64,000 bases of DNA from Thalia democratica (taxonomy: Eukaryota). The stretch spans positions 50,716,001-50,780,000 of the forward strand of contig OZ241829.1 of assembly GCA_965202585.1 (NCBI GenBank). Reading direction: 5' to 3'. The notes beneath the pieces are model-generated. The model was not told the origin of the DNA. It was given only the letters and a program-made list of their open reading frames with translations, and made no database searches. Shown piece by piece: positions 21,486 through 63,196 of the stretch (its first letter is position 1; the number at the start of each line of letters is the position of its first letter). The position numbers were made by a program, and so were the translations under genes.

Positions 21486-21666
21486 GTAAGAAATCTTTTT
21501 AGAGGACCTTCTCAATGATTATGTATTTTGTTTATACATTTAAAATAACTCTAAAAGTTTACAAATAGAAAATATTTCTAAACTTATAACGAAAAGAACC
21601 AAATCTATTCAAGTAAATAATAGTTTTCTTTCAGTTACTATGATCTTAAATACTTAAAAACTAGCA

Positions 21667-21848
21667 ATGGATGAAGAGAGTCTGTTTAAAGATGAAGAAA
21701 TATTAATGCATCCATCATCAATTCTAACAAATGACAAAAGAAATGTGGCTCGTGATGCAACAGAGCTTCAGAAACTACTGATAGATGAAAGAATGAGATG
21801 TGAAAGTCACAAAACAAATTATCAGCTTCTCAAAGAACAACATACCAA
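21667..21848 (+). CDS. CEP83: CEP83 exon 1
   Basis: ATG to phase-2 donor AA|GT; conserved LIDERxRCExHKxNY motif. Confidence 0.92.
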
Positions 21849-33800: not shown

Positions 33801-36800
33801 CATGTCCCCTTAAACTTCTGTAATGGCCAATTGATCCAGTTTGGGAAACCCTGGTTTAGGGTGATTTTAATGTACTAGACATTTTTAGTACATGTTTTTG
33901 CTGTTTCAATTTTTCTTTTCATCTAAAAAGTTGTAAAGTTTATAATATCAGTCAAATACACAATGTGTTAAAATATTTTTCTCTGTTTATAGGTTTTCTT
34001 TAAAATAAATAAAGTTTTATAACAAATAAGGTTTGAATACCTTTCAAAACAAATTTCAAAGCTCTTTAATAGGGGTGTGCAGTGTACTGTACAGCCCGCG
34101 GTGAAGATCCAGCCGGCCAACAAATTTCTGGCCCATGAAATTTTTTAAGTTTGAAAAAAAAGGTTTTCAGCAATGATATAGAACTTCAAAGAACTTTTTT
34201 TATATATTTGCAGTGAAACTTTGAAAATTACACGGCTAAACGTTATTTTTATTAAGTCCAGGCCGCAAAAGATATTTTCTGGCCCGCAGAAAAGAAAAGT
34301 TGCATACTCTATGTTATAAGCTAGACAGGTTATCAAATTAGTTTTTTGTTAAACACAACCAAATGAATTTAAGGTAACGAAGTATCCAGTAAATTAGTTT
34401 CCTATGAATGCTTGTAAAAGCTTTGTTTAAAAAAAAGTATACGAACATAATCGATTTTTTTGTATTAAAAAAACAACGTGATACTTCAATTTCAATAGAG
34501 TTTTCAACAATTTTTTTCACAAAAAATAAAATTGGCTCGTATATGAAAGCTTTAAGTACAAACTACAAACCAGTTTTTGTAGAGCTTAAAAATATTATTT
34601 AACTTTTGAGATATAAATTTTTTCTAAAAGAGTTTCCGATACAAACGTATGGACCGTTATTTTTCAGGGTCAATTTTCTCTGAAATTGCAAAAATCACTA
34701 AAAATATATTTTTTCCTTCATTTTTTGAGCTAGAGACCTGTTACATTCAGGAAATGTTCCTTTAAATGTTGCGATTTTAGAAATATTGAAAAATAAATAT
34801 TTTAGATTAAAAAACAAAAAAGTAAGTGGTTTTTTTTAATAACATTTTATTTTCGAAAATTGAAAAAATTCCTGCATTAAATCTAATAGAAATTTAGTAA
34901 TGGAGTTTCTGTGAAATTTTGAAGAAGGTTGCTTTAAAATATAAAGGAGGAGATATATTTTTAATGAAATAGCCTTTTTTCGCGTTTATTGTTTGCGCCT
35001 TCCATAAGGAAACTATTGAGCACACAGGTTTTGATCGCTTATATCTCAAAAGTTAATTTGAACTTTTTTACGCAATTAAAAATGTCTAATAGCTCAGATA
35101 AAACCCTATAAAATAAGATCAACTTATAAAAATCAAGGTGAATACCTTATGCCCTTTATATACGAAAATAACTGTTCTGTATTAGCATATGGTAATATTT
35201 ATAATCAGATTTTTAAAATATAGGTTGTGACTGCATCGGGTAAAGCTGCATATACACTGCAAATGGGAACAGAAGCTTATTGATTAAAGATTAGATATAT
35301 ATAGTTTATAATTTTGGTTTAAAAAAATTTTTTTTGTCATGTCATCAAAAAATAAAAGATAAAACATCATTAATTTTGTTAACAAATTAAGTACAAATTT
35401 ATATAAAAAATCTTATTTCAACAATCCAAATCCAAACAGATATTTTTTACATGTTATAATTTTAATTCTTATGATTTTTCCATAAATCATATAACGGATG
35501 TTTGTGTAATAACTTTTGTTTAGTGAAATAAGATTTTTTACTTAAATTTGTACTTGAATAATTTGTTATTTCAATAGTAAGAACTTGGTTAATATACAAC
35601 ATTTGATTCAAATTTATTTGTAAAAATGTTTAAACACTTATTGTATAGTTTTTATTGTGTGATTTTAGTTTATATTTAATATATACTGTTAAGTTAATTT
35701 ACTAAATACTAGGTTTGCATATTACAAGAAGAGATAGACGAAGAAAGGAAGCTACGGGAAAACATAAATAGAGATATGTCATCCTTGCAAAAAAATTACT
35801 ATCAAGATATCGCTAAAATTGAAGCTAATCTAAAGACTGTTGAGGTGGGTAGTAGTTTCGGGCAGTATATACAAAGTGTATAAATATAGTATTTTTTAGT
35901 TCTGTGTTTTTAAAACACCTAAATTGAATAGTATGTTTATTTATTTTGTTTGCCACTAATAAAACAGATGGAATGCAAATCACTAGAAAGTCAATGTGAT
36001 AGATACAAACATGAATTACAAGCCAGTAACGAAAAAATATTAATTTTATCTCAAGATCTCCAACAAGCTAATAAGCAATCTGCATTTTTAAGGTTATACT
36101 TTTTTGTTTTAAGGTTATTAGTGCATTTTTCTTTATAATGATAAATAAATTTTGATGGTTTCAATTCGTATTCAATAGCTTTTTTTTTGGAAAGATATGT
36201 TACTAAGTATAGTTTTATTGTAAAAGATTGTTATATAACTTAAAAATAAAATTCTTTATAAAATACATATTTCATTCCATAATTTTTTTGAATACAATTC
36301 AACGTGACCAAAGTCTGATTGTTAAAGTATAAATTTACTGTTTACTTAGAATCATAATTCTTTTAATGAAATTTCAAAAGCCCGTCACTTAAAAGCGTTA
36401 TTTACTAAAAAATAATAGTTGAGATTTTGAAATCTTAAAATATATGAAAATGTATATAAAAACCTACATATTAGTTATATCTTTTTAATCTGACTGAAAT
36501 ACTAATTTTCAAATATAACTTTTAGTTACTGCTTTTTTATTTAAATAAGTTGTACTACTTTTATCTATGTAGTATTGTCTGACTTCAGTATTACTTTAAA
36601 TTAAAGTTTATATTTATTTCTGTAGATATATTTGGATATATATATTTTAAACTATAGAGTGTACATATTTAAGTTAATGTTTATGAACAGAGAGGAGTTA
36701 GATGAGAGTTTGCATAGAAAAAAAATAAGTGACGGCGAACAAAAAATGAATCTTCTTAAAGTAACAGGCGAACTCAAAAGAGAAAATGACAGCATGTGTG

Positions 36801-39800
36801 CCAAAAATAAAGGTTTGTGAAGTAACTAGAATGTTTTTAGTACGAAATAGCAAAGATGAGTAAAATATTTAAATGGCTAATCTGTATGTTAAGTCTTTTA
36901 TTCTTGATGTATCTTTTGAACAAATCACGCAAAAAGTTGTTATAAGTGTATTGCAGTGTTTCCTTAAAAGTTTATAAATATGGTATATACTTTTTAATAG
37001 CTTTATTATAATTTGTTTCCATAGAAATAATTACAACTATAGCTGAACTTTGTCCAAAAAGAACATATGTTTTACAAAATATATAATCCTTTGCTATTAA
37101 ATTTGGGTCAGCATTATTTATTTGAGTAAGTTTGCTAGTACTCAAAATCTTGCCCACTCGTGGCTTGCTTAGTTGCCATTTTGCAAATGCTATAAGTAAT
37201 ACTTTTCCTTGCCTGTTGCTACTACTCACAGTAGCAACACAAAGAGCTACTTTATTGGTATTATTTCAATTACAACCTTAATGCTTAAGTAAAAATATTA
37301 AGTGAACTAATTCTAAGTGTCTTTAGTTTAGTTAACTAAAGCTACTTAAATATAACTTCAACGGTGAGTTTCATCATTCTTATTGATAAAAATTCAAAGT
37401 ATTGAAACTGTACTAAAACACTTATAAAAAACTAAACTTATGAGATTCATCTGATTTATTTCCTTAGTTTCATTATGTATAATTAGTTTCATTCAGAATG
37501 ATTATAATAAAAACTAGGGGAGGGCAAATTTTCTGTTTGGCAGGCTAGTCTTACTTGAAAAACTCTTCGCAGGTCGGTTTATCTAAAAATATGTAGTATA
37601 AATTAAAAAATGTATCTAGTCAAAAATGTTTCGAAGTTATTTTTTAAGAATCACTACTGTGAGTTGAAAATTAAATTATGAGTACTCTTCAAAATACTTG
37701 TTATAAAAAATTATGTTTTGCACTACATAAACAATTTCAATTGTAAAATAAAAATTTTAGTCGTTTTGAGTTAACATTTGTACATTAATAAATAATTTAA
37801 ATTTTTGTATAAACTATTAAGTTTTTTATTAATAGACTAAATTTTATGATACTTTGAAATGAATATTAAATCAGTATTTATGTCTTTTAGATTCAAAAGG
37901 TTAACATGCAATCACCTTATTTATCAAGCTTATATAATAGTTTTTTAGTAATTTATAGTGTTCACTTTGTTTTAAAACTTTGTTGATTGAACAATTCTAC
38001 ATGATTTTTCTTCCTTTAAAAACCCTTGTTGTTCTAAATCTCTTACTTCAAGTTGATTCTTTATTCGTATTGTACTTTGTTCGAAATAAACAAACGAGTT
38101 AACTGTAGTTAGTACGAAATTTTTATTGTAAATGTTATTTTTACTAAGTTAAAAACCTAGTGAAATCGAAGAAAACTTAGTTTTCATAAAACAAAGTTTT
38201 AAATTTTCTGCTACTTAGATTCTACGGGTTAAAGTTCTACTTCACAAGTACTGCTTTAGTTTTTCTTTCCGTGTAAATGTCAGCCATATCAATCTCTGAA
38301 ATGTTGTTTCTCAGAAATTATTGGGTAGTGATGATTAATTTAAGATCCTTTAGCTAAACTAAATTAGGTCTTTTCTTGCAGTCATGCTAGATGAAAATAA
38401 TGAAGTTGCATAATAGCTGGTAGTACAAGTAGTTTAAAATTTCAAAATATCGGTTTCAATTTTTTTCATAATGGCTCTCTTTTCTTCAATCAAGCAAGTT
38501 AATTTAGTACTAATTGAGTTATAGTATTTACAACTTAGTAAAAGTCTCTCACCACTACTACTTAATGTAGATGTTTAAGTCAGCATCAACTTAAATGGTC
38601 CGTCTCTCTAATACTCTTCCTAATGCTTCTCTCTTTTAATCTCTTTCTTCTTGAATAAAACAAAAAAAAAATGTCTAAAGCTCTAAAGAATTTTAATAAA
38701 CACTTAGTTGTATTTTCTTAGTTTTAAACAAACAGTTTATTGCTATTTCACAAAAGTTATTACTTTTACTTACATTAGCTTTTAGGTTTGTAGTTTAAGA
38801 TTTCCTCAAATTAATAGCACAATGAAAATCCATCTGTCAAAAAAAAAAAAAAGTCATGAGCTAAACCTATTTCTTTCAGCCGTCGTTTCCTCAAATTATT
38901 TTGTAACTAATTTGCATTATGTTTTTGCTCTTATTGTGTATTACAGAATGTTTCTTGATTTTATTTTAATGCAAACTTTCTTATTTTTTCGTCACTACAT
39001 TACCATTTTTTTTACATTGATAGATCTTTTAATGTTTTAAGATACTAATGTATTATAATAAAATAACTCTGATTTCATTAAATAGCTTATAACACATTTA
39101 TTATCCAGTAAATATCTCTTTAATTTACTGAACAACAAGTTTAAAACAAAGAAGCCAAAAGAGAACCCACACTTAATCACTTTTAGTTTTAAAAACCATA
39201 CCATTACACATTAATAATCTTGTTAAGAGTTCTAGTTTATTTTTTTACAGCTTTTTATTTTTTAATTGAGCTCAATTGATTGCAAATGAACTTGCACTCA
39301 ATTATCATATTAATCCTTATTTGTTATTTTTTCGGCTATAAACACTAAGTACTCTCACAGATTTGTTCACACTTAGCATGGAATCGAAAAACGGAATACT
39401 TTTCAAATATTTTAAGTTCTCAAGCTTTTTTATTAGTACTTGAAGTTTTAAAAACTTACTTTACAATTTTTTTTGATAGATTAAATTTAGCCATATTTGT
39501 AGTTTCAATAAAATGCCTTAAAAATCTTTACTATATACTACTGTTTAAATGTTAAAATGTTCACTTTAGATTTAAGAAAGTCCCTGAAATATTATTTAAC
39601 TTAGATTTGGAAACTAAATTAGAGCTTCAGAAAAGTACAGTTGAAGAGTTAGAAAAAGAACTGGCTAAAGTTGAAGAAGATAACAAAGTAAAGATGCAAG
39701 ATGAAATCAAAATCGAGTTGGAAAAGTATAACACTCTTTCCAACGAAAAGTTTGTTGTTTTAAAATATGAATGTTTTTTTAATTATCTGTTAAAATAAAC

Positions 39801-42800
39801 TTAAAAAGGTTTAATCATTATTTTGAAGTATTTGAGTATTGGAACTTATTTCTAAGTTTTACGGAATTTTACAAACAAAAATTTACCAGGCTACTTCATA
39901 AATTTAGTAACTTATGTTTTTTTCTATATTAGTTACAACTTATTAAAATAGCTTTATTTTTTTCCCTTGTATGCTTTCTTGAACTTTTCAGCTAGCTCAA
40001 TCCAAATAAGTTTTATAAAAATACTAAATAAAAAAAAAAAATAAAGTTTTTGCTACTTCTTTGACCAAAGTTTCAAACTACAACAGTTTTAAATAAAACA
40101 AAGTAAACTTTCACATGCACAGTGGGCTGGCAAGTGGTCATTGACTATTTTCGCGACTAAGCAGTTAAAGCAAGATTTTTATTTAATTGTTTAGAGCGGG
40201 GTTTAGTCTTTTAAAAACTCGGTTTATTTCTGTTCTGCTTAAAGTATACTAAAAGTTATGTAAGCTTAAATGTAGCCAAAGTTTGCTTTTTTTAAGTTTA
40301 AAAAAGCCTCGAAAAATGCTTAAATTTTTGTCAAAATTAAGGTCTACATCTACTGTTAAAAAACACCTTATAAGCTTTTATACAAATACTTTTTTTTAAG
40401 TTTTTTCATTTCTTTGGTTTAATGTTCATTGAAAAAAGTCAAAATTCTTTGAATATTTAAATGTAAAAGTATATTATTTCTCATTTAAAAAATCTTCTAT
40501 TCTCACCGAAAATTCATTGATGCTTTTCTGACAATTTTGGGTATTCTTCAGGGTTAATTTTCTCAATTCGCCACCGAAGAACCAACATAATTTTTTTTTA
40601 AATAATCTAGTAAAAATGACAAGGAATCTATATACAAATTTACAGACAAATCTATTATGTGGAATATAACTATTTTTTTGGTTTTGAAAAGCGATATTTC
40701 TGTTAAAAAAATTGATATAATATCCTATCCCTGGTTTTTCACTGTGAAAAAAAAGACCATTTTGTATGTTCTAGAAGGTTCTTAATGTGTATAGATTCAC
40801 TTACTTTTGTTTACAGATCATTTAAGCTCCAAGAATGATGAGAACAGTTAGTATTGGTCAAAACATGGTAGCTTAGTATATGTTTTAGTCATTGAAATAG
40901 TTTTTTTTATACTATTTTAGCAAATTAAAGGTTTTCTTGAAAAACCGTATCCCACAGGCCATGGTGGAACTTCTACAACAGGTAACGAAGTCAAAACTTC
41001 GCTAAACACCAATAATAGGACTCTGCTGACGAAGCATATTTCTGATGTTAGTTTAAAAGAAAACATTTACAAAATTATTATGTATGTTTCCATTATTTTA
41101 TGGCCTATAAATTCTAACAGAAAGATTAATGTAGAGAAATACTCAGTCTTATTTCAAAAAACAATGATGCTGGTCATGTCGGTTAAATGGATTCGCTTTA
41201 CTCCAACTACGCATACTGTTCTCGCACATAGTGCTGAACTAATTGAGCAAAACAACGGTAGAGGTTTGCTAAACTACACCGAAAGTGGATTGGAAGCTAA
41301 AATTAAGTTTCTAAGACAGTAAAGAATGAACTTTTCAAGGAAAACTTCTCAGTATGAAAATTTAACAGACTGTTTAAATCGATTATGGGACAAGAGTGAC
41401 TACGATGTTAATAACACTTTAGACAGACTGAATTGCACTTATTGTAAAGAAGTCGGACATACTGCGCGAAGTTGTTTGCAGCTAAATTAAATAAATTCAT
41501 CATGTATTTCAGAATGAGAAACGTTGTTACATATGCTTTGTGCTACTGAATAGAGTGTTTTATTTATTTGAGAAACTTAATTTCAAAGAAGTTTTAAGAA
41601 CTTACTGTTTGACTTATATTTTATAGTAAATTTAAAGTACTTTTTTTAATCACAGGCTAAATTATTTTGTTTTTTGCACTGTTTTGCATCGAATAAATGT
41701 TTTTATTGTTCAAATTGTTTACAGTTTTTTTCTTTTGATAAACTAGTACAAATGTAACGTTATTAATAATACAAACTTTGATATACAAAGATCAGCCTTA
41801 AATTAAAAATAAACTGTATTTAAAGTATAGTTTCACCCGGCTTGATATTGAAAATTCATTCATATTTAAACTAAAATGGAAGTAAATGTGACTCTCTTGA
41901 GGTAGCCAATTATAATTTTCTTTTTTTTTTTAAGTTTCTTTCTTTAAAGTTTCATTAGAAATTAAAATTTAAACTATTTTTTAAATAAAAACAAACATTA
42001 TTCTTATTGTAACACTAAGTGTAACTTTAATTTGTATTATAGTGCTTCTTATGACAGTTTTATGTCAATGGCCGCTTGATCCCCGTTTTCAGCCCACTGT
42101 GACATGTTGTAGAAAATTTATAGTTTTTATTTCTACTCATTTATCAAATACTTACTAATTTTAATATTCCTTACTTTATATATAAATAGCTAATAAGACT
42201 TAGATAATTTTTTTAACTTTTTTTTAGATCAGTTTTGGATCAACATGTATCTGATTTAAAGCAAAGATTACAAGATGAAAAAAATCACAACAATAAAAGA
42301 TTAGATAAGCTAAATGAAGAAGTTCATAATAAGGAAATCGAACTTAAGAATACAATAAAAAATCATAATATACTCAAGTAAATAATAAGTTTAAAACCAT
42401 TAATTTTGTAAGAGCGCTTTTACTAGTTGATAATGAAGAAATCGAAACTAAGAATACAATAAAAAATCGTGATATACTCAAGTAAATAATAAGTTTAAAA
42501 CCATTTAATTTGTAAGAACGCTTTTTCTAAATTCAATATTTGTTTTTCAATCTCAATAACGATAAAACAAAGTTAACTTTGTTCGTATTTGTTAAAAACT
42601 TACGAGACGAAATGCTAAAACTTTTTTTGCAAAATGTTTTAATTGTATTGAATAGTTTAGATAATAATATCAGTAATCAAAACAATCTAATAATGATTAA
42701 AAGTAGGTTCAATACATTTTTATGTGACATAATACATCCTTAAGCATAAAAACATTTATAGAGACAAATTTCGGGATTTAGAAACAGAATTAAGCAAGAT

Positions 42801-45800
42801 GAGTAGACAGGTACAAGACAATGAACACATAAAACAGCGATTAGTTGAGAAGGAGTGTTTACTAAATGATGCTTGTAAACATAAACAAGTTGTACAAGAT
42901 GAATGTGAAAAGTATAAACATCAACTTACAATTGTTAGAAATGAAGTAGAACTAATGAGAAAAAAAGCTGATGATGAAGTTTGCGATGTTAAAAAGTGTG
43001 TTTTCGACTAATACTTAAGATATTTAGTATTAAAGTTGAAAATAAACATTAAACAAACTTTCAAACTTGAAGAGTTCTTTAATATAGACCTACTTAAAAT
43101 GTATTACCACTAAATTAAATGTACATATTTATACTTACAGAAGTTTACAGAAAAATAAAGAAATGTTTGTATGTGAAAAACAAAAACTTCAAAATTCTCT
43201 TAAAGAATCTAAAGATATTTTAAAGAAAGTCAACTGTGAAAAGGAAAAGACTAAAATAAATTATAAAAAGTTAGTTTTGTAAAGAAAAGTAGGAACTGTA
43301 TTAATTTTTTTCAGCATTTTATATCATACAATAGAAATTTGAAACCACTTAAAATTTAATTATATCAAAGATTAAAAGTAAGCTGCTTCAAGAAAATTCA
43401 AAATTTGTGCAATGAAAATGAAATACTTAAAGCAGAACAAGAGAAGCTTCAAATTCAAATTAAAGCCGGAAAGTTGGTTGTATATATTTAGTAAAACATA
43501 AAACTCTTTATGTGTAGTTTGAACGTAGTAATTTAAGCTTTCATACTTGTTTTAGATTGAGCTTAAATACTTTCCTTTATATTTAGGTAAAATTGTGAAT
43601 TAAAATTGTTAATAAATAAATAGTTATAAAGCAAGTATAAAATACTGTAAGTTTGTTAGTATAATAAGTTTTTTTTTAATATTGAACAGTTTTATACTTT
43701 CTACACTAGTTTAAATATTTTTTTTAGAGTAGTAGTATGTGTTTTTTTATTATAAAAAAAGAATCATGTTTTCTATTTTGGTTTTGTAAATAAGCCATTT
43801 ACAGTTGTTTTTAGTGATCTGCCAGATACAAGATCCTAATTTTTTTTTAAATAACCGGATCCGGTCACATCCTAATGTTATGGATCCAGTAGATCAATGA
43901 ATTAACTTTACTTGTTTCAGCTCCTTCCAGTTTTTTAAGAAAATTGTAGAATATAAAAGTGTTTACAGATCTTTAGCCCCATATTAGTTGACGAAAAAAT
44001 ATTTAGAGTTTTTTATCTTGAAACTTTAAAATAAGAGAATTTATGATAGTTTCTTTATATTAATATAAAGAAAAATTATATATATATATTTATTTATTTG
44101 ATTATATAAAAAACAACGTATTATATAATTATTATAATCAAATAAATATTTAGCTCCAAGATTTGTTTTATCAAGTTAAATTATCAAGTTTTTACGCCGT
44201 TAGTCGGAATAAAGTTTTAACACAAAAACATCTGTGGTATATATATGTATGTAAAGAAATAAGTTGATTAACTTAATAAATAAATTTTTTCAACACAGAG
44301 CCCATCTTAAGGGCTTTTTAAAAAAATAAAGTTTATTAGAAAACGTAAAAACTTGCAGAACTCAAGTTTCGTACCTACGCACTCCTCAACTGTAAAACAA
44401 GCTCAAAATAAAGTACAAAACAAAAAATTCAAACGAAAGTTTAAAATTTAAGCATAAGTATATTATGACGTAGATATAAAACTGTTAAAAATCATGCAAA
44501 ACGGCCTGTACAAAAATTATCTTCCCAATCGACAATAAACTGGCAAAAGTTCATAAAACTTCAGTGAGTAACTACAAATTTGAAATGAAATTTGAATAAG
44601 ATAAAAAGTTAAATAAAAATAGAAATTTAAATTAATATAAAGCGAAATCAAAACTTATTAAACTGTAAAAGCGATTTTTTTATATGTCTACAAGACGATA
44701 CAAACTCGCTTCTTTTGTTTAGGCAGGTCTTATCTTTCAGTGCATACACAAGGCTGTTGCTTCTTTGAGACACAGGCTACATATCGGGCTATTGCCGTCA
44801 GCTATAGACTGTGCTCTTTTTATAACTTCCCAAGATATTTCAAAGTCAATGCCGCTGTGGCTCGGTCTTTGGCAGTTAAAATATACTTATTATTACAAGA
44901 TGACTCATTTAAAGGACCGACAAGATCTATGTGAACAAACTGGAATCGTTCCGTATTGTCTGGAAAAAAACCAATTTTTGGACGATTATATCTTGTTACT
45001 TTGGTCGCTTGACATACCACACAGCTTTTGACCCAATGAGTCACATCTTTTATCAATGTAGGCCAGTAATAGTCTTTTGCAATAGACTCGATTGTTTTAT
45101 CAATTCCCAGGTGCAACCTATCATGGGCCACATTAAATGCTGTTAGGCGCATAGATTCGGGCAGAATGATTCGCTTATTATTTTCGTCTACCACTACCGC
45201 TAAATTATCTGGTTGTAAATATTCGACCGTTTTCTTCATATTACGTGCGGTATCTACTAGCCCCGGTTCATTACATTGCAAGACCGCAATAACTTCCCTA
45301 TTTATCATATTAAAGCTAGTCGTATTTTCCCCGATCACTTCATTTAACGGACTACCTAAAATTTCCTCTTCACCGTCTAAATCACCGTAATCAGACTCGC
45401 TGTCTTCAGCCTCTGACTCAGACGTATAAACAAAATCAGAATCCTGGTTATACGCACGAACATGCATTGCCGACTGTGGGGGTCGGCTTAAACTATCTGC
45501 TACTACATTATCATGGCCATCTATATGCCTTACTATTGGATTAAATTCCTTGATTGCGCATATCCAACGTTGTTCCGCTGGAGAATGATTACCCATTTCG
45601 TTTTTAATGGCCCTTTCTACTGATTTACTATCAGTACGTATTATTAAGGATCTCCCCAATATTCTGCTTTGAAAGTGCTTAAGAGACAAATACACCCCGC
45701 GAAGTTCCTTATAAAAAGTAGAACGTACTTGCTTAAATGGAGGGAGCTTTTTTGAAAAAAACGCAAGCGGTTGCATTCCCCCATTTCTCCCTTCTTGTTC

Positions 45801-54800: not shown

Positions 54801-57800
54801 CCCCCCATGTGTTGATTACTATCACACCCTTTGTTCAGTGTCTATAACAACGCTCATCATTTACCTGATTTATATATCGTCTGTTAATATAATTTTGATA
54901 GTGAGCGCTGTCAAACTAGTTTTTGGGACGTCCTTAGCCATAATTGACTTGTCTAATTGGTGGTTCATTTCTCTTTTGTAATGATTACTGTTCTTTTTTT
55001 TTGAGGTGTGTTAAAATACTTAACTTCCCTTGCTGCATCCCTAGTTTTCCCATGTATGCATCACAAATGTCCATTACCCACCTTTTAAAATCAACCAACC
55101 CAAGTTAAAGAGTAATTGATACTGTGTTTTTCAAGTGGTTTGGGATCAAGTGTAAGTAAAAGAACTTGTGTAAAGCTTCCTTATCTTCTAATTCCATCAT
55201 CAATTTGTTGACTTCGCTATTAAGGTCACATCCACTGATGGCGTGATGTTGTTTTTTTGGTAGTAAGACCCTTGGTAGTACTCCTTTTTTTTTATGAGAT
55301 ATCTTCGTAAACTTTTAAAATCCCTATGATTAGGCTCCGTGCATAATAAATAGGCTGACATGTCGTTATTCGGCCAAAATTCGCGAAGCACCCAGTATTT
55401 CTCAGCGTTATCAGTAATGCCTTGATTGGCCATTTTTTTTCTCGAAGTACAAGAACTAAGCCTTCGCACTTTCAATATCAAATTTAAAAGTCTTTAGCCA
55501 CTTGAGTCTCTAATCTCTCAATCTAATTGACTCAGGGTTCATGATCCGCACACTCTCATATTATTTTTTATAAACTGTTGGTAATAAGGTGTTAGCACTA
55601 ATATGTTTTGTGCTAGCTGAATAATTTGGTGTTTCCATGTAGTGCAATGGTTCTCTTACAGTTGTGGGGAGATTTTGTCTAGTATCTTTAGCAGGGAGAT
55701 TTGTGCTAGTATCTTTGGCTGAATAATATGGTGCTTTACTTTTGTGCAAGGGTTCTCTTACAGTTGTGAAAATATTTTGCCCAATGCCAAAACTATTTTG
55801 TTCATGTCAATTCTTTCCCCTACCTGTTCACTTTGATCTACTTGAGTCACTTATCTGGTTAATTACGCCTCAGCAGCTGTAATTCCTCTTCTAATGCTCC
55901 AGCTGCTTTTTGTCTTTACAGTTCCTGATTTACTCAATTTAACTGTCTGACTTCATCCTCTAAAGTTTTTGTTAGCCAACTAGCAGTATAAGCTATGTTT
56001 CCTGCCATCATGGGACTATTTTCATTTTTTAAACTCAAAAAGTTGGGTCTTCCTACATCTGTAGTATCAGGAGGTCCCATGTACTTATTAGAATACGGGT
56101 CACCATTTTTAATAGACCCAGCATGGTTTGGGTTGTTACTTTTAGAGGTAAGAGCTTTGATCCTTTTTTGGCCACACGTTTGAGTGTTTAACTCTAAAAG
56201 TAATATCTGAGCTTTCCTCACTCATTGTACTACTATTATATCACAATTAGAATATATGAATATTAGAGCTATTTTTAGTCATTAACTGCCAAGTATACAT
56301 AAAACTCTAGTAATAGCTGTGCTCAAATGTTTATTCAACAAAGCAATACAAAAAATACACTAACTAATCTTGTAGCAACTGATGAAACAGAATAATCGTA
56401 AGAAAACATAAATGCTTTCCGGTGCCAATTTTATAAAAAAAAGTGTGGTAGGGAAAAAGCTAAAAGTAACAAAGGAAATTTTGTTACACTACATCAAAAA
56501 AAATCAGTTCTTTCAAAACTAGAATCTATAGTTTTTTTAAGTCAAATCTGTTAAACACCTTTCTGAGTTTTTTTTGAAAGCCATTAATAATTGGACCTAA
56601 CTTACTTTCTACGATAGCTAAGCCATCGTCTCTATTAATTCCAAACTTGTTTTGCTGAAAGATATTTTCGTTCTCAAGTTCATATAATATAAGCAACCCT
56701 ACTAGTTCGCATACTTCTGCAATTTGAAAACTTCCCTGCGGCATATCAAAACCATCACCCGTATCCTTCTTCGACCACGCACAGTTATTATAAATAAGGA
56801 TTGATTAGCAGAAGTGAACTACTGTGTCAATTTCGTCCTTACTAATTGCGCAATAGTTTTTAGCTAATGCTAAAGCTTCTAGCAGCGTATTTCTAGAAAT
56901 ACTCGGGTAGAAGTCTTTGACAACAAACTTAATGAATCTATGCTTTTGTTTGTTATCAATATTATTGAACTAGTAATAACGAATTGAGTGTTTTTCCATT
57001 AGTTTGACTTCATAACAGACCTCATACTATTAACTAACTTATCTAAAATGTTCATAGCTATTTGGCCGATATTTGTTTTAGACGGGTTTATTACTCTACA
57101 CTTAGGTTTATTTGGAAATCCAGGTTTATGATTTTTTAAAGTAATAAATGCATCTTGTTGTTGTAATTTTCGAATTTGACAGGAAATTTTTTAAGTTACT
57201 GATAGTTTTTCGAGCTTCTTCATCAATTATTTCTAATGCGTTGCTTTCGCACTTTTTGTAGTTTGTAGTTATGTTTTTTTTTAGTAGGTTTTTGTTATAC
57301 TTAGGTTTATTTTTATTAATATTTAGTGAATTGTCAGCAAAATTAATTTATTTATTTGAGTTTCTTATTTCTTATAAATCATATCTAATTTTTGTGAACA
57401 ACGGGTTAATTAATCCTATTTTTATGCATCTGGTTGATCACTAGTTGTTTCTGGTTTATAAAGATTAGTCAAACTTAGTGCTAAGTAAATTATTTGAGCA
57501 GACCTTTTAAACACTTCGTATTTTTTTTTAAGTATTTTTTTTGAGTTATTTTATTTATAAAGTACTTTAAATTAAAGGTTTTTATTTATATTTATTTATT
57601 TTAAGTTTCTCTTTTCTAGTTGAAACAAATAAAACACACCTTTTTGCATGATTTATGTAGACTTAGTGTATAAAATATATATATTAAAACTAAATACCTT
57701 TTTATCTAGGCACGGAGTTTCAACAGAGGAGCACAATAGAGTAAGAAGTGAACTTCGTGATATGAAGAGAAAGTTGAGTCAGTTTCAAAGATGTATTTCT

Positions 57801-57893
57801 GAAGAACAACAAACCATCGGTTTTTCAAGCCCCTCGCAATATAATAATAATTTACGTAAATCCTTAAATTCGTCATCCCACGCCAACTTTTAA
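21667..57893 (+). CDS. CEP83: Centrosomal protein CEP83 (CCDC41), 14 coding exons, 2016 nt, 671 aa
   Basis: Exons 21667-21848, 28342-28480, 31604-31717, 32426-32544, 33247-33385, 35713-35844, 35968-36092, 36691-36812, 39605-39749, 42228-42377, 42762-42995, 43141-43269, 43371-43472, 57710-57893, phases all consistent. [44 protein letters not shown] and [18 protein letters not shown] match human CEP83 ([53 protein letters not shown]) as remembered. Confidence 0.92.
21973..22070 (-). repeat. ~95-bp dispersed hairpin repeat, copy 6 (diverged), in CEP83 intron 1
   Basis: Plus strand TATTGAAC..GCTCAAAA..GGTCATCGAGTTGCATACC. Confidence 0.6.
22454..23048. mobile_element. hAT-type MITE in CEP83 intron 1
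   Basis: TIRs TAGGGGTGGGCAA / TTGCTCACCCCTA; 8-bp flanks CTCTATAC / CACTATAC (7/8). Confidence 0.8.
23555..24270. repeat. Foldback MITE with ~130-bp inverted arms plus an adjacent partial inverted second copy
   Basis: 23557-23690 is the reverse complement of 23875-24005 (shared AAAGGTTTGATCATACCACTTTGATTATCA); 24028-24270 is an inverted copy of the core and left arm. Confidence 0.75.
24600..25720 (-). mobile_element. Penelope-like element 3' fragment (GIY-YIG endonuclease end + 3' UTR) with inverted terminal arms
   Basis: Minus strand 25620-25285 reads [52 protein letters not shown]; 24731-24851 and 25602-25720 are inverted repeats. Confidence 0.75.
25751..27545 (+). mobile_element. Decayed hAT-like DNA transposon
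   Basis: Broken frames 26450-27480 ([33 protein letters not shown]) resemble hAT transposase; candidate ends CAGGGTTCTAAT / ATTAGGAACCCTA; TSD not clean. Confidence 0.6.
28342..28480 (+). CDS. CEP83: CEP83 exon 2
   Basis: tttttag / gtaag; [15 protein letters not shown].. Confidence 0.9.
28590..31145 (+). mobile_element. CR1-like LINE, 5'-truncated and decayed (RT + 3' UTR), interrupted at ~29620-30050
   Basis: [49 protein letters not shown] motifs with stops and frameshifts; AAT-rich 3' end. Confidence 0.85.
31604..31717 (+). CDS. CEP83: CEP83 exon 3
   Basis: [28 protein letters not shown], homologous to [28 protein letters not shown]. Confidence 0.9.
32426..32544 (+). CDS. CEP83: CEP83 exon 4
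   Basis: [20 protein letters not shown].. Confidence 0.92.
33247..33385 (+). CDS. CEP83: CEP83 exon 5
   Basis: cag / gtaag; [19 protein letters not shown].. Confidence 0.88.
34070..34311. mobile_element. hAT-type MITE related to 22454-23048
   Basis: Ends TAGGGGTGTGCA / TTGCATACTCTA, internal GGCCCGC/GGCCGC motifs; no clean TSD. Confidence 0.55.
35713..35844 (+). CDS. CEP83: CEP83 exon 6
   Basis: Phase 0/0 coiled-coil exon [13 protein letters not shown].. Confidence 0.85.
35968..36092 (+). CDS. CEP83: CEP83 exon 7
   Basis: [23 protein letters not shown], homologous to [23 protein letters not shown]. Confidence 0.87.
36691..36812 (+). CDS. CEP83: CEP83 exon 8
   Basis: aacag / gtttg, phase 2/1. 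Confidence 0.85.
39605..39749 (+). CDS. CEP83: CEP83 exon 9
   Basis: ttag / gtttg, phase 1/2; [19 protein letters not shown].. Confidence 0.85.
40118..42101 (+). mobile_element. Transib/RAG1-like DNA transposon, internally deleted non-autonomous copy, 1984 bp, in CEP83 intron 9
   Basis: Both ends begin CACAGTGGGCTG; perfect 5-bp TSD ACATG (40113-40117, 42102-42106); transposase C-terminal remnant inside. Confidence 0.92.
40921..41490 (+). pseudogene. Transib/RAG1-like transposase C-terminal half (one premature stop at 41320)
   Basis: [60 protein letters not shown] parallels RAG1 [42 protein letters not shown]..HHW; ends [14 protein letters not shown]. Confidence 0.85.
42228..42377 (+). CDS. 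CEP83: CEP83 exon 10
   Basis: Polypyrimidine tag / gtaaat, phase 2/2; [14 protein letters not shown].. Confidence 0.85.
42326..42529 (+). repeat. 104-bp tandem duplication of CEP83 exon 10 3' end, donor site and intron start
   Basis: ATAAT.A.GAAATCGAA..TAAGAATACAATAAAAAATC.T.ATATACTCAAGTAAATAATAAGTTTAAAACCATT occurs at 42326 and 42430. Confidence 0.9.
42762..42995 (+). CDS. CEP83: CEP83 exon 11
   Basis: tag / gtgtg, phase 2/2; contains ORF-track peptide [15 protein letters not shown].. Confidence 0.85.
43141..43269 (+). CDS. CEP83: CEP83 exon 12
   Basis: ttacag / gttagt; [17 protein letters not shown].. Confidence 0.83.
43371..43472 (+). CDS. CEP83: CEP83 exon 13
   Basis: caaag / gttgg; [29 protein letters not shown]. 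Confidence 0.75.
44340..44856 (-). mobile_element. Penelope-like element 1, 3' part (C-terminus + 3' UTR)
   Basis: [39 protein letters not shown], a typical PLE GIY-YIG C-terminus. Confidence 0.8.
44345..44396 (-). ncRNA. Degenerate hammerhead-ribozyme-like motif in the PLE 3' UTR
   Basis: UUGAGGA-GUG-cguagg-UAC-GAAA-CUUG-aguucug-CAAG-UU: stems II and III pair, core C3 is U, stem I is poor. Hammerheads in PLE UTRs are established. Confidence 0.35.
44857..47354 (-). CDS. pol: Gypsy pol: protease, RT, RNase H, integrase N-terminal part (intact frame)
   Basis: [65 protein letters not shown]; last 12 aa of the track ORF are read-through into the PLE. Confidence 0.95.
47499..47548 (-). promoter_or_regulatory. 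Programmed -1 ribosomal frameshift signal at the gag end
   Basis: Heptamer A AAA AAC (47548-47542) in gag frame, followed 3 nt later by a 12-bp stem TTCCCATCTTCA / TGAGGATGGGAA; the -1 frame is open (47602-47336 ORF). Confidence 0.7.
47518..48723 (-). CDS. gag: Gypsy gag, 401 aa
   Basis: Intact ORF upstream of pol; C-terminal [15 protein letters not shown] (CX2HX9C) motif of CsRn1-like elements. Confidence 0.88.
   Translation of the reverse strand: MIKTKKGLRQKNKLTGHADTEPSVSADFNGDSDLISNSQSPSNIQATINSAHETEVSAQTRDNNEIVDFNALDEVDLDVEDLAHLLEQAKVLEKKNKLKNELKAIYRRLDTNKTINDSGLTLNNHTSHALGEMSTQISFKKKTLENCKLFQKIDAVRDPAVELRFFEDRCTAYGITSEMEKFEILQRIWPRSDIIDFVETHDEDRTYSSLVNFLQGKGSKLPRILGASPSWPEPVQFQDLFLAAKQWAKSKEEDRIKYFMHRHAPNNLKNKIKECFGLEYNEFIRRTEFICDIEEQRVFENAKNFSYEPQRFKHNKRYYKQKWHENIPQKREHFRSYEHSRSQGYFGEGYNKRTNYEQNALCHKHAKFGDRADYCAAVSTCPMSPLRQQHDQKNDFPSSKQ
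48882..49162 (+). CDS. Gypsy integrase catalytic core, direct continuation of the minus-strand pol
   Basis: [37 protein letters not shown] continues ..LTAKDRAT without loss. Confidence 0.9.
49163..50092 (-). mobile_element. Penelope-like element 1, 5' part (RT remnant to GIY-YIG), decayed
   Basis: [66 protein letters not shown]. Confidence 0.85.
50092..50294 (-). pseudogene. Histone H4 pseudogene, 3'-truncated
   Basis: [40 protein letters not shown] / [18 protein letters not shown]; 1-nt frameshift and many substitutions. Confidence 0.9.
50390..50724 (-). pseudogene. Histone H2B pseudogene
   Basis: [47 protein letters not shown] with indels and stops. Confidence 0.85.
51300..56230 (-). mobile_element. 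Second Ty3/Gypsy element, heavily decayed (gag ~56220-55000, PR ~54250, RT/RH ~53750-52500, IN ~52450-51500)
   Basis: [41 protein letters not shown]-like and FLGHC fragments; gag peptide related to the first gag; PPT AGAAGGAGAGAAG (51460-51448) followed by TG. Confidence 0.8.
56480..57470 (-). mobile_element. Penelope-like element 2, decayed RT fragment
   Basis: [30 protein letters not shown]-like, [29 protein letters not shown]; overlaps the homologous part of PLE 1, so it is a separate copy. Confidence 0.8.
57710..57893 (+). CDS. CEP83: CEP83 exon 14 (terminal exon of the short form)
   Basis: tttatctag acceptor, phase 2; [25 protein letters not shown]; TAA followed immediately by AATAAA (57894-57899). 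Confidence 0.85.
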
Positions 57894-58121
57894 AATAAAT
57901 TTTATTGTATTACGTTTCATTACGCTTTCAAAATACATATAATTTTTATTACGTTTTTTTTTTTCAGTTATGTTAGTCTACGCATGTTTTAAATATTGTA
58001 AACATAAAAAACTAATGTAGAGTATATTGAGTTAGTGAGTTTTATTGTTAGAAAGAAATAGTTGCAGATATTATATTATGAAGCACCATTTTTTGTTGAA
58101 AACATAACTTTTAAATTACAG

Positions 58122-60487
58122 GTGAGTGTGACTACGCATCAACTTCTTGGTGTAACAGCAGACCGTACCAAAGTACTGCTGAAATATGCTTTAATCCTAC
58201 TAAGAAGTTTCTTAAAAGATTTGGTTACAAAGCTAGCATTGAATACTTAGAAAGGTGCATTAAAAATTTTCTGTGTAGAATTAGAAGTTACAACAAAGTT
58301 ACAGATAAAATTAAAGACTTTAGCTACCCTTGCGATTTGCTAATTCAATTAAATAATGAAATAACCACTGCTCTGACTTCTTTAAAAAACCAGCAAGTTA
58401 AAGACTTTTCGACAAACACTAATACTCAAATCTTTGTAAACAAGAGTACTTCTTACAACCCTTACTCTAACAAAGGATGTTGTATCAATAAAGCAAAAGT
58501 CTCTGTTGATAAGTGTTTTTCGAACATAAGTAGCGTACTGCCCAAAGTAGATGTTGACAACGTAGTTACAAATAATAAGCAAGTAAGAAGTTCATCTACT
58601 TTTAGCTCTTATAACTGTAATATAAACAAACCTTCAGTTGGTTGCTTAAATATTATTTCAAAAAGCACAGAAGAAATTTTACCTAAGTTACCAACTTTTT
58701 TTGCAGCGAACAAGTCTTCTGAAAACCTTTTGAAAAAAAACTTTAAAAAAGATAAAATTGTTCAACATAATAAAGATTTCCAAATGTTTTTGGGCAATGT
58801 TGGTTTTTTAACTAACACAAAAGTTTGCAAACCTGATATTAAACCAACTAAATGCTCAAGTCAAATTATTTCTAAAGAAGAATCTTCAAACTATAATAAT
58901 ACACATCCAATCGCATCAATTTTCGACAAAAATAAAACACATTTAGCCACTGGAAAACTTAAAAATTTTAAAAGTACAGCGAGTTCAGATTTTAGTGTAG
59001 TTCCAAGTCATTTTAATTCAGTTTCTCACAATAAAGATCTCAAAGCTGTTGAGTCAGAAGGTTGCCCGGAAAATTCTTCAAATATGTGGGTCCACCCTTC
59101 TAGTTTAATTACGAATAAGCAAAAAAGTATTTTTAATAAACTGAAATCTTCTTATTTTAATTTGTCTCCAACAAAAACATCACATTCCAGTTTTGATGTC
59201 AATAAAGCTAGCTTTTCGCATTCAAAATTGCCATCAAATATCATAACTACAGATAATAAGGACTATAGTAAAAGTTTAAAAGAGAATTTAAATAGAACAC
59301 AAAATCCTACCAAAAGCACTTCAAAACCTTCGAGCGATGCGGTTGGTATAGTTTATAAAAAAAGTTTACCTAAAGAAAATTGTTTTGAACAAGTTAATAC
59401 AAGCAAACATAATTTGCTTGATGCGAACAAAGTTTCAACAGCTTTAAATAGTAGTTGTTTCACGAATGAATCTGCGGCGATAAGTTCTTTAAATTGTAAA
59501 AATCTATTAATGCCAAATTTAGATAAAAGCAAATTGATGGAAGGTGTATACAATGAGGTAAAAAACTGTTTTTTGCATTACTTTGACGTTTTTAATGATA
59601 TTAGTCTTCCTTGTCAATCTAATAATCACGTTAAAGACCAAATAGATCTTAAAGTACCGTTTTTATGTAAAACAAAAAATAACGAAAAGAAAAACATATC
59701 AAAAGCTAGTTATAAATTAACTGAAAACAAAAAATCATTCATGAAACCTTTAAACAGTCAAAAACTTCCTTGCCATAAATCTAAAGATGATAGAATTTTT
59801 AATAAAGCCTTCTCAAAAAACCTTATGCCTGCTAAAAACTATGACAGAAATAAAACTAATTGTGGTTCCGCTTTACCTATTTTTAAAACATTTCCACAGA
59901 AAGTACCAAACAGAACCAAGTCAAATAATAGTAATTATTCTGATAAAAACTGTATGAAACAATATTTGTCGTGTAATGATAAAACAATAGCTAAGGTACC
60001 TAAAAAGACAATGTCCGTTTTAACTCTTGGAAAGGAGTTTTATAGTTTTAAACTAAATTTCCATCAGTCTGCAGCTAGTTGCAATAACTTTAAAAACCAA
60101 CTATGTAAAGATTACAGAAATTTCAAGCTTCAGACTTCCTCCTCAAATTGTAAGATAAAGATTTCTAATAAGAACAATTATGTTAACACTGCACATACAA
60201 CAAAACTTCATTCTAAAAGCACTGCTGAATTAGTTGCAACCAATCAAAAAGTTTCAGCTCCGTCAAATAAAATCTGCAGTGTTAAATCAAAAACTCACTC
60301 CAGCTTATCCAACAGCTTAAACTTAATAAATATATCAAAGAGCAGTAATCATGTCTCAAAAAGGGACCGAAAAATCAGTTCTGTTAAGAACAATGCAAGC
60401 AAGCTTAAAATTAAGTTTTCAAGCCCAAATTGTAACTCAGATACAGTTTTATCTAATAACCCTAAAGATCACTTTAAAAAAATCTAA
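58122..60487 (+). CDS. 2366-nt open exon encoding ~788 aa of Ser/Asn/Lys-rich, probably disordered protein; candidate CEP83 exon 15 or last exon of an unknown gene
   Basis: The frame of the 716-aa track ORF stays open upstream to 58115, with no ATG before the track start, and begins at a ttacag acceptor (58121, phase 1). About 790 stop-free codons in DNA this AT-rich are unlikely by chance. Confidence 0.75.
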
Positions 60488-63196
60488 AGATGAATGGGTG
60501 TGTAATAAGTTAAGGAATAGGTATTCATTTAAAAAAATCTGTCCTAGTTTTGAAATATTTTTATAGTGTTTATTTAAAAAGTTTTAGCTAGTATTACTTT
60601 ATAGTTTATACTTAAGTTTTATGTGTAGTGAATTGAAGCCTCAGATTAATTACGTTTTAAATACTATGAATGTTTCTGCCACTTATAAGATAATAAAATA
60701 TTATCTTATTTTGTTTGATTTGCAGTGTTTTCAATATTAAATAATAAAAGATAGATCAAGCAAGCTCGTTATAATAGTAAAAACATCTCTGATTTTTATA
60801 ATTGTTATTAAGTGACGTTTTGTTATGTTAAGTTGACATGACAATCTTTAGTTGCTTGTTAAATAAGTATGTTAAAAATTGGTCAGAAAAATAATTTTCA
60901 TAAAAACACGACAATAGTATAAAGTAATAATTTAAATTTATTGTTGTAAAAGTGTAGGACATTTGGGACAGAAACAAATAGCTTATAAATGTTATCGTCT
61001 CTCTAGAGGTTTTATTTCACGAGGAATTTTATTCGATGATGAATATTAATCATAGTTGCCAAAATTACTTACAAACCCATTACATACACAAAGTCAGCAT
61101 ATAACAAATACATGGGAAAAAATTACGTAAAATAATGTCTTTAAGTTTTAAAAACGTAGTTCTTTTGTACTTAGCCTGTTAAGTACAACTAAATATTTCT
61201 CTATCTAACATGAAAACTTTAAGAAACAATACCTTAAAAGCAAAATGTTCTTTTTTTACATAGTTCTATGAGGAAAAATAGTTTGCTATCTCTCTGTACA
61301 AACTGTTAAGTGGTTGATTTAATTACCTATAAATAATTAATTGTTTCATTTTTCTTATCTCAACTTTAACATATAACTTTATTATAAGCTGATAAATTAT
61401 AAACATAATAAAAAAAAATCTATTTAGCTATTAGTTTTAAAAATACAACACACTTTTTTTCTTAAAAATAAAACCTTTTCTCTGATTAGTAGTAAAGTTT
61501 GTATTCTAAATAAAAACTCAATAGAAGCTTTGTGAGAAACTTTAGATCAATACTAAAAACTTATATTGAAAGCATTGTTAAAGCGAAAAGATACATGTTT
61601 CTGCAAACTGTCATAGATATTATTTTGCTGTAATTTCACTGTCAATTGTAAGTTTGTTAATTTAAACAGAGTCGTTTTAAATAGACTATTTTAAAATCTA
61701 GCAATTTAAACTTTTACTGTTATGCTTTTGTAAAATTAAACACACGATCAAAACGAAGAAACCACAACTGTTAAACTTACTGAAACACATATAATGCGGC
61801 TATATAAATAAGTGTATTTGTAACTAAAATATTATTTATTTTAAAACGAAAACATACTTTTGTTTCCAGAACAAAAACGTCAACAGTTTTGCAAATTTGT
61901 AACAATGCCAATAAAAAGTATTTTACAACTAATACTAGCTTACGTAAAATAAAACATTTAAGATACTCAACTAGTTTATTATTTTATAGTTAAGATTTTA
62001 TAATTATAGAATCTTTTTCAATGCTATCAATAATTAATGCGCTAGTTGTTTTTTTTTTGCACAATGTCACTTTTGCATGAGTCGTCAACTTAGCACAAGG
62101 AATTACTTTTACGCGGCATCAACTTTCCGAGCTTGAATTTTGTGAAATTACAATAAAACCCAATTAGAAGTTTTTTAAATTATTTTTCAACCTAAATAAA
62201 AGTTTGTCTTTGACTAAATTCAAACTTATATAATTAAAAAACTATAATATAATTACAATTAAATAAACCTATCAAAATTAAGTTTAAAACAAACAAAAAA
62301 AAGCTAAAACGAAGTTCAAAAAATAAATTTTATTACTAATCCAAGTTAATTTAAATGATTAGTTTTTTTACATTTATATGAAAAGAAATTTTTACTCAAC
62401 TTAAAAAAAAACTTTTTAATCTATAGTTTGTCGTTTCAAAAAGGTTTTTATATTTTCAGTTTTATACTAATTAACTTGATCCAAATATCGACACCGTGGT
62501 TTTTCTGTCAAACGTAAAGTTTTTTTAGATAAGACAGTAATGGATACTGAAGAAAAACTAAGTATTTAATCTTAACAAATATGTGATTTAGAATAAAGTT
62601 TAGTATTATTCTAAATCTACTTATTTTTACTTGTTAAAATATTCGAAAAAAAGAAAAATATATAAATGCAGGAAGATTGTTTTCTCAATTTAAATATTAG
62701 CTTGTTTAAACTATTTTAACATTAACAAAATAAGTCTATTTAAAGATTACTTTGACTAATTTTGAAATAAAGTTATAAATTAAAATACGAAAACGCACTA
62801 TCAGTTTAGTACGAATCAGGGTGTTTAGAAACAATATGGTTTTTTTTTAATTTTACTTATTCACATTTTGATAATTAGAAAATATCTTTGCTTAAAAACT
62901 TTTTAAAAGATTTATTTCTTAAAAACACTATATTCTAATAGATAAACAACAGTTTGATAGTTGATACTAAAAGCGAACTGTTTTGATAAATTATAGTAAT
63001 CGCATTTAAAAATAAGATTTGTTTTTTTTAATGACCGCCGGTGGCGTTAGAGGATTATTTATTAAAAAACACTTTATGAAAATATAAACAATGTATGGCT
63101 TTGTGCTCTGTCAGCTTGTGCACCAAGCAAATCACATTTATTTTCTGTACTTATTATTATAATATAAAAAAATCTTTTACCTTATATATTTATAGT

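Follow-up and report, generated by a model that had tools for sequence, protein, structure and literature searches.

A coiled-coil gene on the forward strand of a 64,000-nucleotide (nt) stretch of the Thalia democratica genome (contig OZ241829.1, positions 50,716,001 to 50,780,000; hereafter the window, to whose whole length all positions refer) quite probably can end in two ways. Its exon 14 appears to be composite: left unspliced it closes a short protein, while splicing from an internal donor to a downstream tail exon gives an alternative long form. In a sister species, here termed species C (the source of contigs L018-L024), the junction is directly observed, as are the two mRNA forms and a third that keeps the intron. 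The donor and acceptor in the window are letter-identical to those of species C, and we infer that the window's own species likewise makes the long form, and that competition between splicing and polyadenylation regulates the choice between forms. Syntenic relatives are L004, a metagenome scaffold ~95% identical to the window with an N gap at 58678-59002, and L002 and L003, ~67% identical, whose last exon lies ~220 nt ahead of the same acceptor. The features at issue are these:

57710..57819, + strand: the part of exon 14 in both forms; four RNA contigs carry the 43472->57710 join, and the exon end in L018/L019 is the 57819 equivalent.
57820..57825, + strand: internal 5' splice site of the long form, G|GTTTTT, phase 1; junction in L018/L019; the window, L004 and species C share an unchanged site, its GT absent in L002.
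57820..58121, + strand: long-form intron, 302 nt; L018/L019 lack the homologous 345 nt kept in L020/L021; retained in read-through RNA.
57820..57893, + strand: short-form extension of exon 14, the final 24 codons (FSSPSQ...SSSHANF) and the stop at 57891-57893; unspliced RNA contigs traverse it.
57894..57899, + strand: AATAAA of the short form, read from the sequence, directly after the short-form stop and within the long-form intron.
57925..57951, + strand: 3' ends of short-form RNA contigs, at 57925/6 in X2 and in species-C L023/L024, and at 57951 in X1.
58122..60487, + strand: coding part of the tail exon, encoding the 787-residue tail and its stop.

The evidence for the junction begins with a protein. 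A word-index search with the whole tail open reading frame (ORF) returned P0009 at 76% identity, and the 90% cluster of P0009 holds two 1398-residue proteins as well as several of 671-672 residues. Among the contigs of species C, a single 1398-residue ORF is present in L018 (JGI 3300018898; 4419 nt) and likewise in L019 (Logan ERR1719320; 4515 nt); L020 and L021 (JGI 3300018893; 4.9 kb) retain the intron and carry a 672-residue ORF followed by one of 643 residues; and L022-L024 have the 672-residue ORF of the short form only. L019 aligns to the window in 15 blocks, and because all 13 upstream introns are gone from both L018 and L019, these contigs represent complementary DNA (cDNA). The joint in each reads ...ACCATCG|GTGAGTGTGAC..., corresponding to 57819|58122 in the window and bounded by GT..AG in the unspliced form, and the protein across it reads ...ISEEQKTIG|ECDYASTSWC.... 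The two sides of the joint have just 3 nt in common, leaving that much ambiguity in its placement, and so little common sequence argues that it is not a k-mer chimera; L018 and L019 moreover differ at 11 bases and come from separate assemblers. L020 and L021, for their part, are read-through RNA, unbroken from exon 1 into the 3' untranslated region (UTR) of the tail. The original prediction, that an intronic poly(A) site yields a short form in place of a long one, thus finds both of its mRNAs in species C, where the short-form contigs L023/L024 terminate at the 57925/6 equivalent, just as an X2 contig does, and inside the long-form intron. Of the two junctions proposed there for RNA evidence, 57855 or 57819 to 58122, the second is the one found in L018/L019; 57855 is not the donor used. 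As an observation apart, the species-C long-form intron carries a threefold tandem repeat of ~24 nt (L020:2290-2360, …AGCATCCAGATATTATGTTATAA…) that the window lacks, and this explains the 345 nt of that intron against 302 in the window.

With the species-C cDNA as guide, an exon model of the window gene could be built in which 14/14 junctions are GT..AG. The window has a G+C content of ~23-25%, and the upstream part of the gene is laid out as follows:

21667..43472, + strand: exons 1-13 of the coiled-coil gene, from L019/L020 cDNA blocks at 92-97% identity, all GT..AG, with the joined coding sequence (CDS) open.
CDS blocks of exons 1-7, + strand: 21667-21848, 28342-28480, 31604-31717, 32426-32544, 33247-33385, 35713-35844, 35968-36092.
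CDS blocks of exons 8-13, + strand: 36691-36812, 39605-39749, 42228-42377, 42762-42995, 43141-43269, 43371-43472.

The shortest intron measures 100 nt and the longest, intron 13, measures 14.2 kb and contains a retrotransposon block. Donors in this gene often look weak: GTTTTT, the hexamer at 57820, is also the exon 4 donor, GTAAAT serves exon 10, and GTTATA and GTTGGT occur too. Both of the phase-1 GTs claimed for exon 14 are present, at 57820 (G|GTTTTT) and at 57856 (C|GTAAAT), the latter sharing its hexamer with exon 10 as had been noticed. In the window the short form comprises 2016 nt and 671 residues, and the long form by way of 57819->58122 comprises 4308 nt and 1435 residues; the lengths first calculated for the 57855->58122 join, 4344 nt and 1447 residues, were arithmetically right. 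A Tara metagenome scaffold from another relative (L016:631-930) matches intron 13 and exon 14 to ~57814 and then runs into unrelated G+C-rich sequence, a break just before the internal donor that is either an assembly chimera or a rearrangement.

The end that the long form would give up is itself well kept. Over 57856-57893, which encodes the C-terminus of the short form, identity to L002 is 92%, and by this comparison the 24-residue short-form C-terminus is strongly conserved. Within it, a run of 23 nt (57867-57889, the last short-form codons, NSSSHAN) is identical in that relative of 67% overall identity, and its codons are G+C-rich and atypical of this genome. Since the identity extends to synonymous sites, it suggests a constraint at the RNA level, for example in 3'-end or splice-choice control, added to that on the protein.

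The tail is read in a stop-to-stop frame on the + strand, 58112-60487, which opens 10 nt ahead of the phase-1 acceptor ttacag|GT at 58121|58122, an acceptor 228 nt past the short-form stop, and continues for 787 residues beyond it. At the local base composition, chance would produce so long an open frame with a probability of ~1e-30. The original prediction had described this ORF as opening at a phase-1 acceptor and lacking an ATG near its 5' end, and so it proves: in the window no in-frame ATG comes before 58784 (residue 221), and elsewhere the first lies at residue ~187 (L004 type) or 48 (L002), with none conserved in any taxon. In unspliced RNA, the ATG at 58784 has eight short upstream ORFs ahead of it. 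The AATAAA hexamers expected right after the short-form stop and at 60692 are both there, accompanied by a third at 60743-60748. Features of the tail exon are:

58091..58132, + strand: conserved 3' splice-site block, with 58110-58132 letter for letter the same in the window and L002 (67% overall identity).
58124..58450, + strand: the first ~100-110 residues of the tail, Cys/aromatic-rich, with two long helices predicted (predicted local distance difference test, pLDDT, 44).
58696..58926, + strand: a 231-nt (77-codon) in-frame stretch absent in the L004-type strain; skipped by an X2 contig and lacking in P0005/L005.
60692..60697, + strand: AATAAA; the L005 contig end lies ~26 nt downstream.
60743..60763, + strand: AATAAA (60743-60748) and poly(A) addition site 60763; X1 contig 4 has 21 untemplated A past 60763.

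In composition the tail is basic (isoelectric point 9.7) and rich in Ser (14%), Lys (14%) and Asn (12%), and most of it is probably disordered; an AlphaFold2 model of its first 119 residues is of low confidence (pLDDT 44) and has no family match. Searches of Pfam, the ESM Atlas and an exhaustive HMMER search gave no relatives of the tail outside this tunicate clade, the HMMER matches being Tara Oceans fragments only. A word-index search with the first 192 residues of the tail and two pattern scans of JGI metagenome contigs likewise gave no match. One 114-residue database protein, P0003, opens with a translation of the reverse complement of the DNA immediately ahead of its own tail fragment; this protein is the product of a hairpin-type chimeric contig and no true variant.

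RNA from the window's own lineage was available from four marine metatranscriptome runs, representing two samples of one study, whose contigs were compared over 57000-62000. In all four sets a loose end from an upstream exon is joined to 57710, and it maps to 43443-43472 (exon 13). From 57710 these contigs continue past 57820, 57856 and the stop with no splicing, ending at 57904, 57925 or 57951. One X2 contig (contig 6) is colinear over 57971-58631 and crosses 58122 unspliced, and L005, a JGI contig from X2's strain, starts at 57971 and is colinear to 60723. RNA cover is absent in the intron ahead of 57710 and past 60840, which argues that this is processed RNA and not contaminating DNA; the 21 untemplated A after 60763 establish that the tail RNA is of the + strand and polyadenylated.

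The starts at 57971 draw attention to one further conserved element:

57954..57967, + strand: T11-CAG acceptor-like site, also conserved in both L002 and species C; 57971 is the first base of two assemblies from one strain.

This site lies 17-43 nt past the short-form RNA ends, and X2 contig 6 and L005 begin 3 nt after it. Site and contig starts could together mark a leader trans-splice site, the product being a tail-only RNA without a usable start codon. The 5' end of the gene has a similar acceptor-like site, ...TTTCTTTCAG|TTACTATG at 21634, where L019 and L024 begin; L020 and L023 reach 65 nt farther upstream.

It could be argued from such a site that the tail ORF is a separate gene, the second cistron of a tunicate operon, served by spliced-leader trans-splicing at 57967|57968, with the species-C fusion a by-product. 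We give this only a slim chance. The two contig starts 3 nt past a conserved acceptor-like site speak for it, as do the ends of upstream-gene RNA at 57925-57951, the 1048 genome copies of the Ciona leader followed by GT, as against 22 for the control (counted with the 16-nt leader as printed in PMC1488885), and the little or no intercistronic DNA in Ciona operons (PMC1488885). However, the conserved first 187-220 codons of the tail have no start codon of their own and are preceded by the eight short upstream ORFs; leader letters are absent from the contigs starting at 57971, and those two contigs may share reads; and in species C the read-through RNA (L020/L021) is continuous across the T11-CAG site. 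The sole in-frame route found is a 30-nt mini-exon with ATG 57970 and donor 57997|57998, followed by a 124-nt intron that ends at the 58122 acceptor. It keeps the frame both in the window and in L004, but was rejected: in species C a stop comes early and the donor is missing, L002 is without it too, and no RNA shows the mini-exon. Finally, the 1398-residue fused members of the protein cluster overturn the separate-gene reading. The likeness to Ciona and Oikopleura operons (PMC1488885) lies in several respects, namely a common strand, a pyrimidine-rich AG a very short distance past the upstream 3' end, a read-through precursor spanning the two parts, and an abundance of Ciona-type leader copies in the genome. 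The difference is that the tail part lacks its own start codon and is cis-spliced to the upstream coding sequence, and that no leader is visible on its contigs. As for the genomic leader copies, the flanks of the six that were read (L010-L015, leader and GT at position 1501 of each) are mutually unrelated in 6/6; L012 and L014 have apparent protein starts 20-70 nt past the leader copy, and L015 has inverted leader-like copies alongside. Such copies could be dispersed spliced-leader (SL) RNA genes or leaders copied back together with mRNA 5' ends.

Between the window and species C, the ratio of nonsynonymous to synonymous substitution rates (dN/dS) is 0.14 over the coiled-coil part, at 95% amino-acid identity, and 0.79 (confidence interval, CI, 0.58-1.07) over the tail, at 77% identity, with 247 substitutions evenly distributed across codon positions. 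Against L004, the values are 0.09 for exon 14 and 0.75-0.88 for the tail; against L002, the tail gives 0.61 (CI 0.49-0.74). Over 744 aligned tail codons, the window and species C show 0 stops where 11.8 were expected, a zero-stop outcome that arose in 0/5000 simulations, and 5/5 indels are whole codons. Comparison with L004 likewise finds 0 stops against 4.2 expected (P = 0.011), and indels of 3, 6 and 231 nt in the tail ORF against 2, 7, 1 and 8 nt outside it. Because stops are absent where they are expected and indels stay in frame, the tail frame is protected while its sequence drifts; judged by these comparisons, the reading frame is under clear selection and the protein sequence is near neutral. 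A few patches are conserved, including KPDIKPTKC, WVHPS, FLH..(x)..LK.PFL and SNHVSK. Conservation and dN/dS in related species had been proposed as checks on the tail; its relatives fall within the clade only, its dN/dS sits at 0.6-0.8 and its frame is protected.

In L002, TCT stands in place of the donor GGT, and the tail has three frame breaks, seen in two assemblies; in L002 and L003 it remains recognisable along its whole length, spread over four frames. The two L002-type assemblies differ by single-nucleotide polymorphisms and have the same frame breaks, and introns of 22-53 nt that might mend them are not credible, the shortest intron in the gene being 100 nt. L002 lacks both the donor GT and an intact tail; the integrity of the exon therefore goes with the donor. 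Other changes, in strains that keep the donor, also point to loose constraint on the tail. The stretch 58696-58926 is present in species C and L002, and includes the longest conserved run of the tail (58828-58854). Its ends read TT..GA, and the matching L004 scaffold has a 101-N gap there, so that its loss fits a genomic deletion allele better than splicing. In species C the tail stop comes 39 codons early. Separately, two species-C-like genomic assemblies (L025:3260-3275 and L026) have A11 where the cDNA L020 has A10, within the tail coding sequence, splitting the tail ORF into 509 and 176 residues; this may be a slippage-prone polymorphism or a homopolymer or sequencing error.

Several results weigh against the composite-exon reading. 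The 57819-58122 joint is absent from the four own-lineage contig sets, which show only short and unspliced RNA and read through both candidate donors, although contigs lose rare forms. The protein collection searched contained no fusion of either the window type or the L004 type. The isoform assembled varies by sample, and contig data yield no isoform ratios. The amino acids of the tail are barely constrained in comparison with either species C or L004, and the tail is broken in L002, short of 77 codons in one strain and of its last 39 in species C. A rival reading would make the long form splicing and read-through noise and the tail a decaying relic that no longer matters as a protein, for which we likewise see little likelihood. 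A dN/dS near 1, the deletion polymorphism, the truncation and the three frame breaks would all suit a relic, as would the frame-shifting A10/A11 run of some species-C genomic contigs and the low relative contig depth in sample S2. A relic does not, however, explain the missing stops (0 against 11.8 and 4.2 expected) or why indels are all in frame in three donor-keeping taxa; dN/dS against L002 is 0.61 (CI 0.49-0.74), the acceptor block is conserved, and the fused path was assembled end to end in one sample. The remaining alternatives were dropped: a transposon or repeat origin, since the tail ORF is single-copy in the 802-Mb genome; splicing of exon 13 straight to 58122, which is in the wrong phase; read-through of the stop codon or frameshifting from the short-form frame or the upstream ORFs, blocked by in-frame stops; and initiation at AUU 58112, dropped for its poor context and want of support.

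The gene is possibly CEP83-like, in that its N-terminal motif ...LIDER.RCE.HK.NYQ.LK... and last helix appear to resemble the human protein. The name stayed unconfirmed after searches of Pfam (a borderline COG6_N match only), the PDB (no match), the ESM Atlas (generic coiled-coil clusters only) and, by fold with Foldseek, the Swiss-Prot models (no match below E = 0.6). Size and shape are as in CEP83: the window model has 671 residues, and AlphaFold2 renders residues 1-330 of the 672-residue P0011 as three long helices (pLDDT 78). Like human CEP83, the protein is ~670-700 residues long and almost entirely coiled coil. The tail sets it apart, having no counterpart in known CEP83 proteins, and we know of no tail of this kind in other animals. 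Human CEP83 (CCDC41) is a distal-appendage protein whose C-terminal region is needed for centriole targeting (PMC6781440).

Two observations concern mitochondrial sequence elsewhere in the assembly. In mitochondrial COX1 (contig C1833), AGA/AGG occur at invariant glycines, for instance in the GGFGNW, DPAGGGDP and FFGHPEVY motifs; AGA/AGG encode glycine in the tunicate mitochondrial code. Together with the genomic copies of the Ciona leader and the Tara Oceans origin of the related sequences, this codon use indicates a pelagic tunicate. Several COX1-like copies with many TAA/TAG stops, at G000:C4:56.84-56.95 Mb and C757:31.3-32.1 kb (L007-L009), are presumably nuclear copies of mitochondrial DNA.

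The mechanism proposed for the coiled-coil gene is of a known kind, a composite terminal exon at which splicing competes with intronic polyadenylation, and the immunoglobulin mu heavy chain, with its switch between secreted and membrane forms, is the familiar example. As in immunoglobulin mu, the last exon of the short form has a 5' splice site within it, the long-form intron takes in the short-form stop and poly(A) site, and differences between the two mRNAs are confined to the C-terminal coding part and the 3' UTR. In species C the internal donor of the short form's last exon reaches the downstream terminal exon, through sites identical in the window, and the stop, the AATAAA and the contig ends at 57925/6 in two species all lie within 57820-58121. 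Unlike immunoglobulin mu, the addition here is a single 2.4-kb coding exon of 787 residues, and trans-splicing in this organism is perhaps a third competing reaction. For the short form, cleavage and polyadenylation would take place ~30-60 nt past the stop at 57891-57893, yielding the 671-residue protein. For the long form, the weak donor 57819|57820 would be used first, such that 302 nt bearing the stop and poly(A) site are excised as an intron, and exon 14 would be joined in phase to a 2.6-kb terminal exon running from 58122 to the poly(A) site at 60763. In essence, the 1435-residue product would exchange the last 24 residues of the short form for a 787-residue basic tail. Given that the C-terminus of human CEP83 carries centriole targeting (PMC6781440), such a tail probably changes the working of the protein's C-terminal end; swapping the ends could alter anchoring, or supply a long basic arm.

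A more ambitious scenario, which we consider rather unlikely, is that the tail exon was once, or still also is, an independent downstream gene of an operon, captured by a distal-appendage gene via the weak donor. The choice among polyadenylation, cis-splicing and perhaps leader trans-splicing at 57968 might then be switched by life stage, placing a basic, disordered arm of 790 residues in particular ciliated or germ cells.

An ATG-less ORF of 2.4 kb of this sort would be overlooked in annotation or taken for a separate gene. If the gene is indeed CEP83, a distal-appendage protein would here have the option of exchanging its C-terminal end for a very long tail restricted to this lineage. More broadly, the tail offers a natural case of a long coding exon whose frame is selected while its sequence drifts almost freely, and which is broken in the only relative without the donor GT. 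This pairing bears on how disordered protein extensions are born, maintained and lost.

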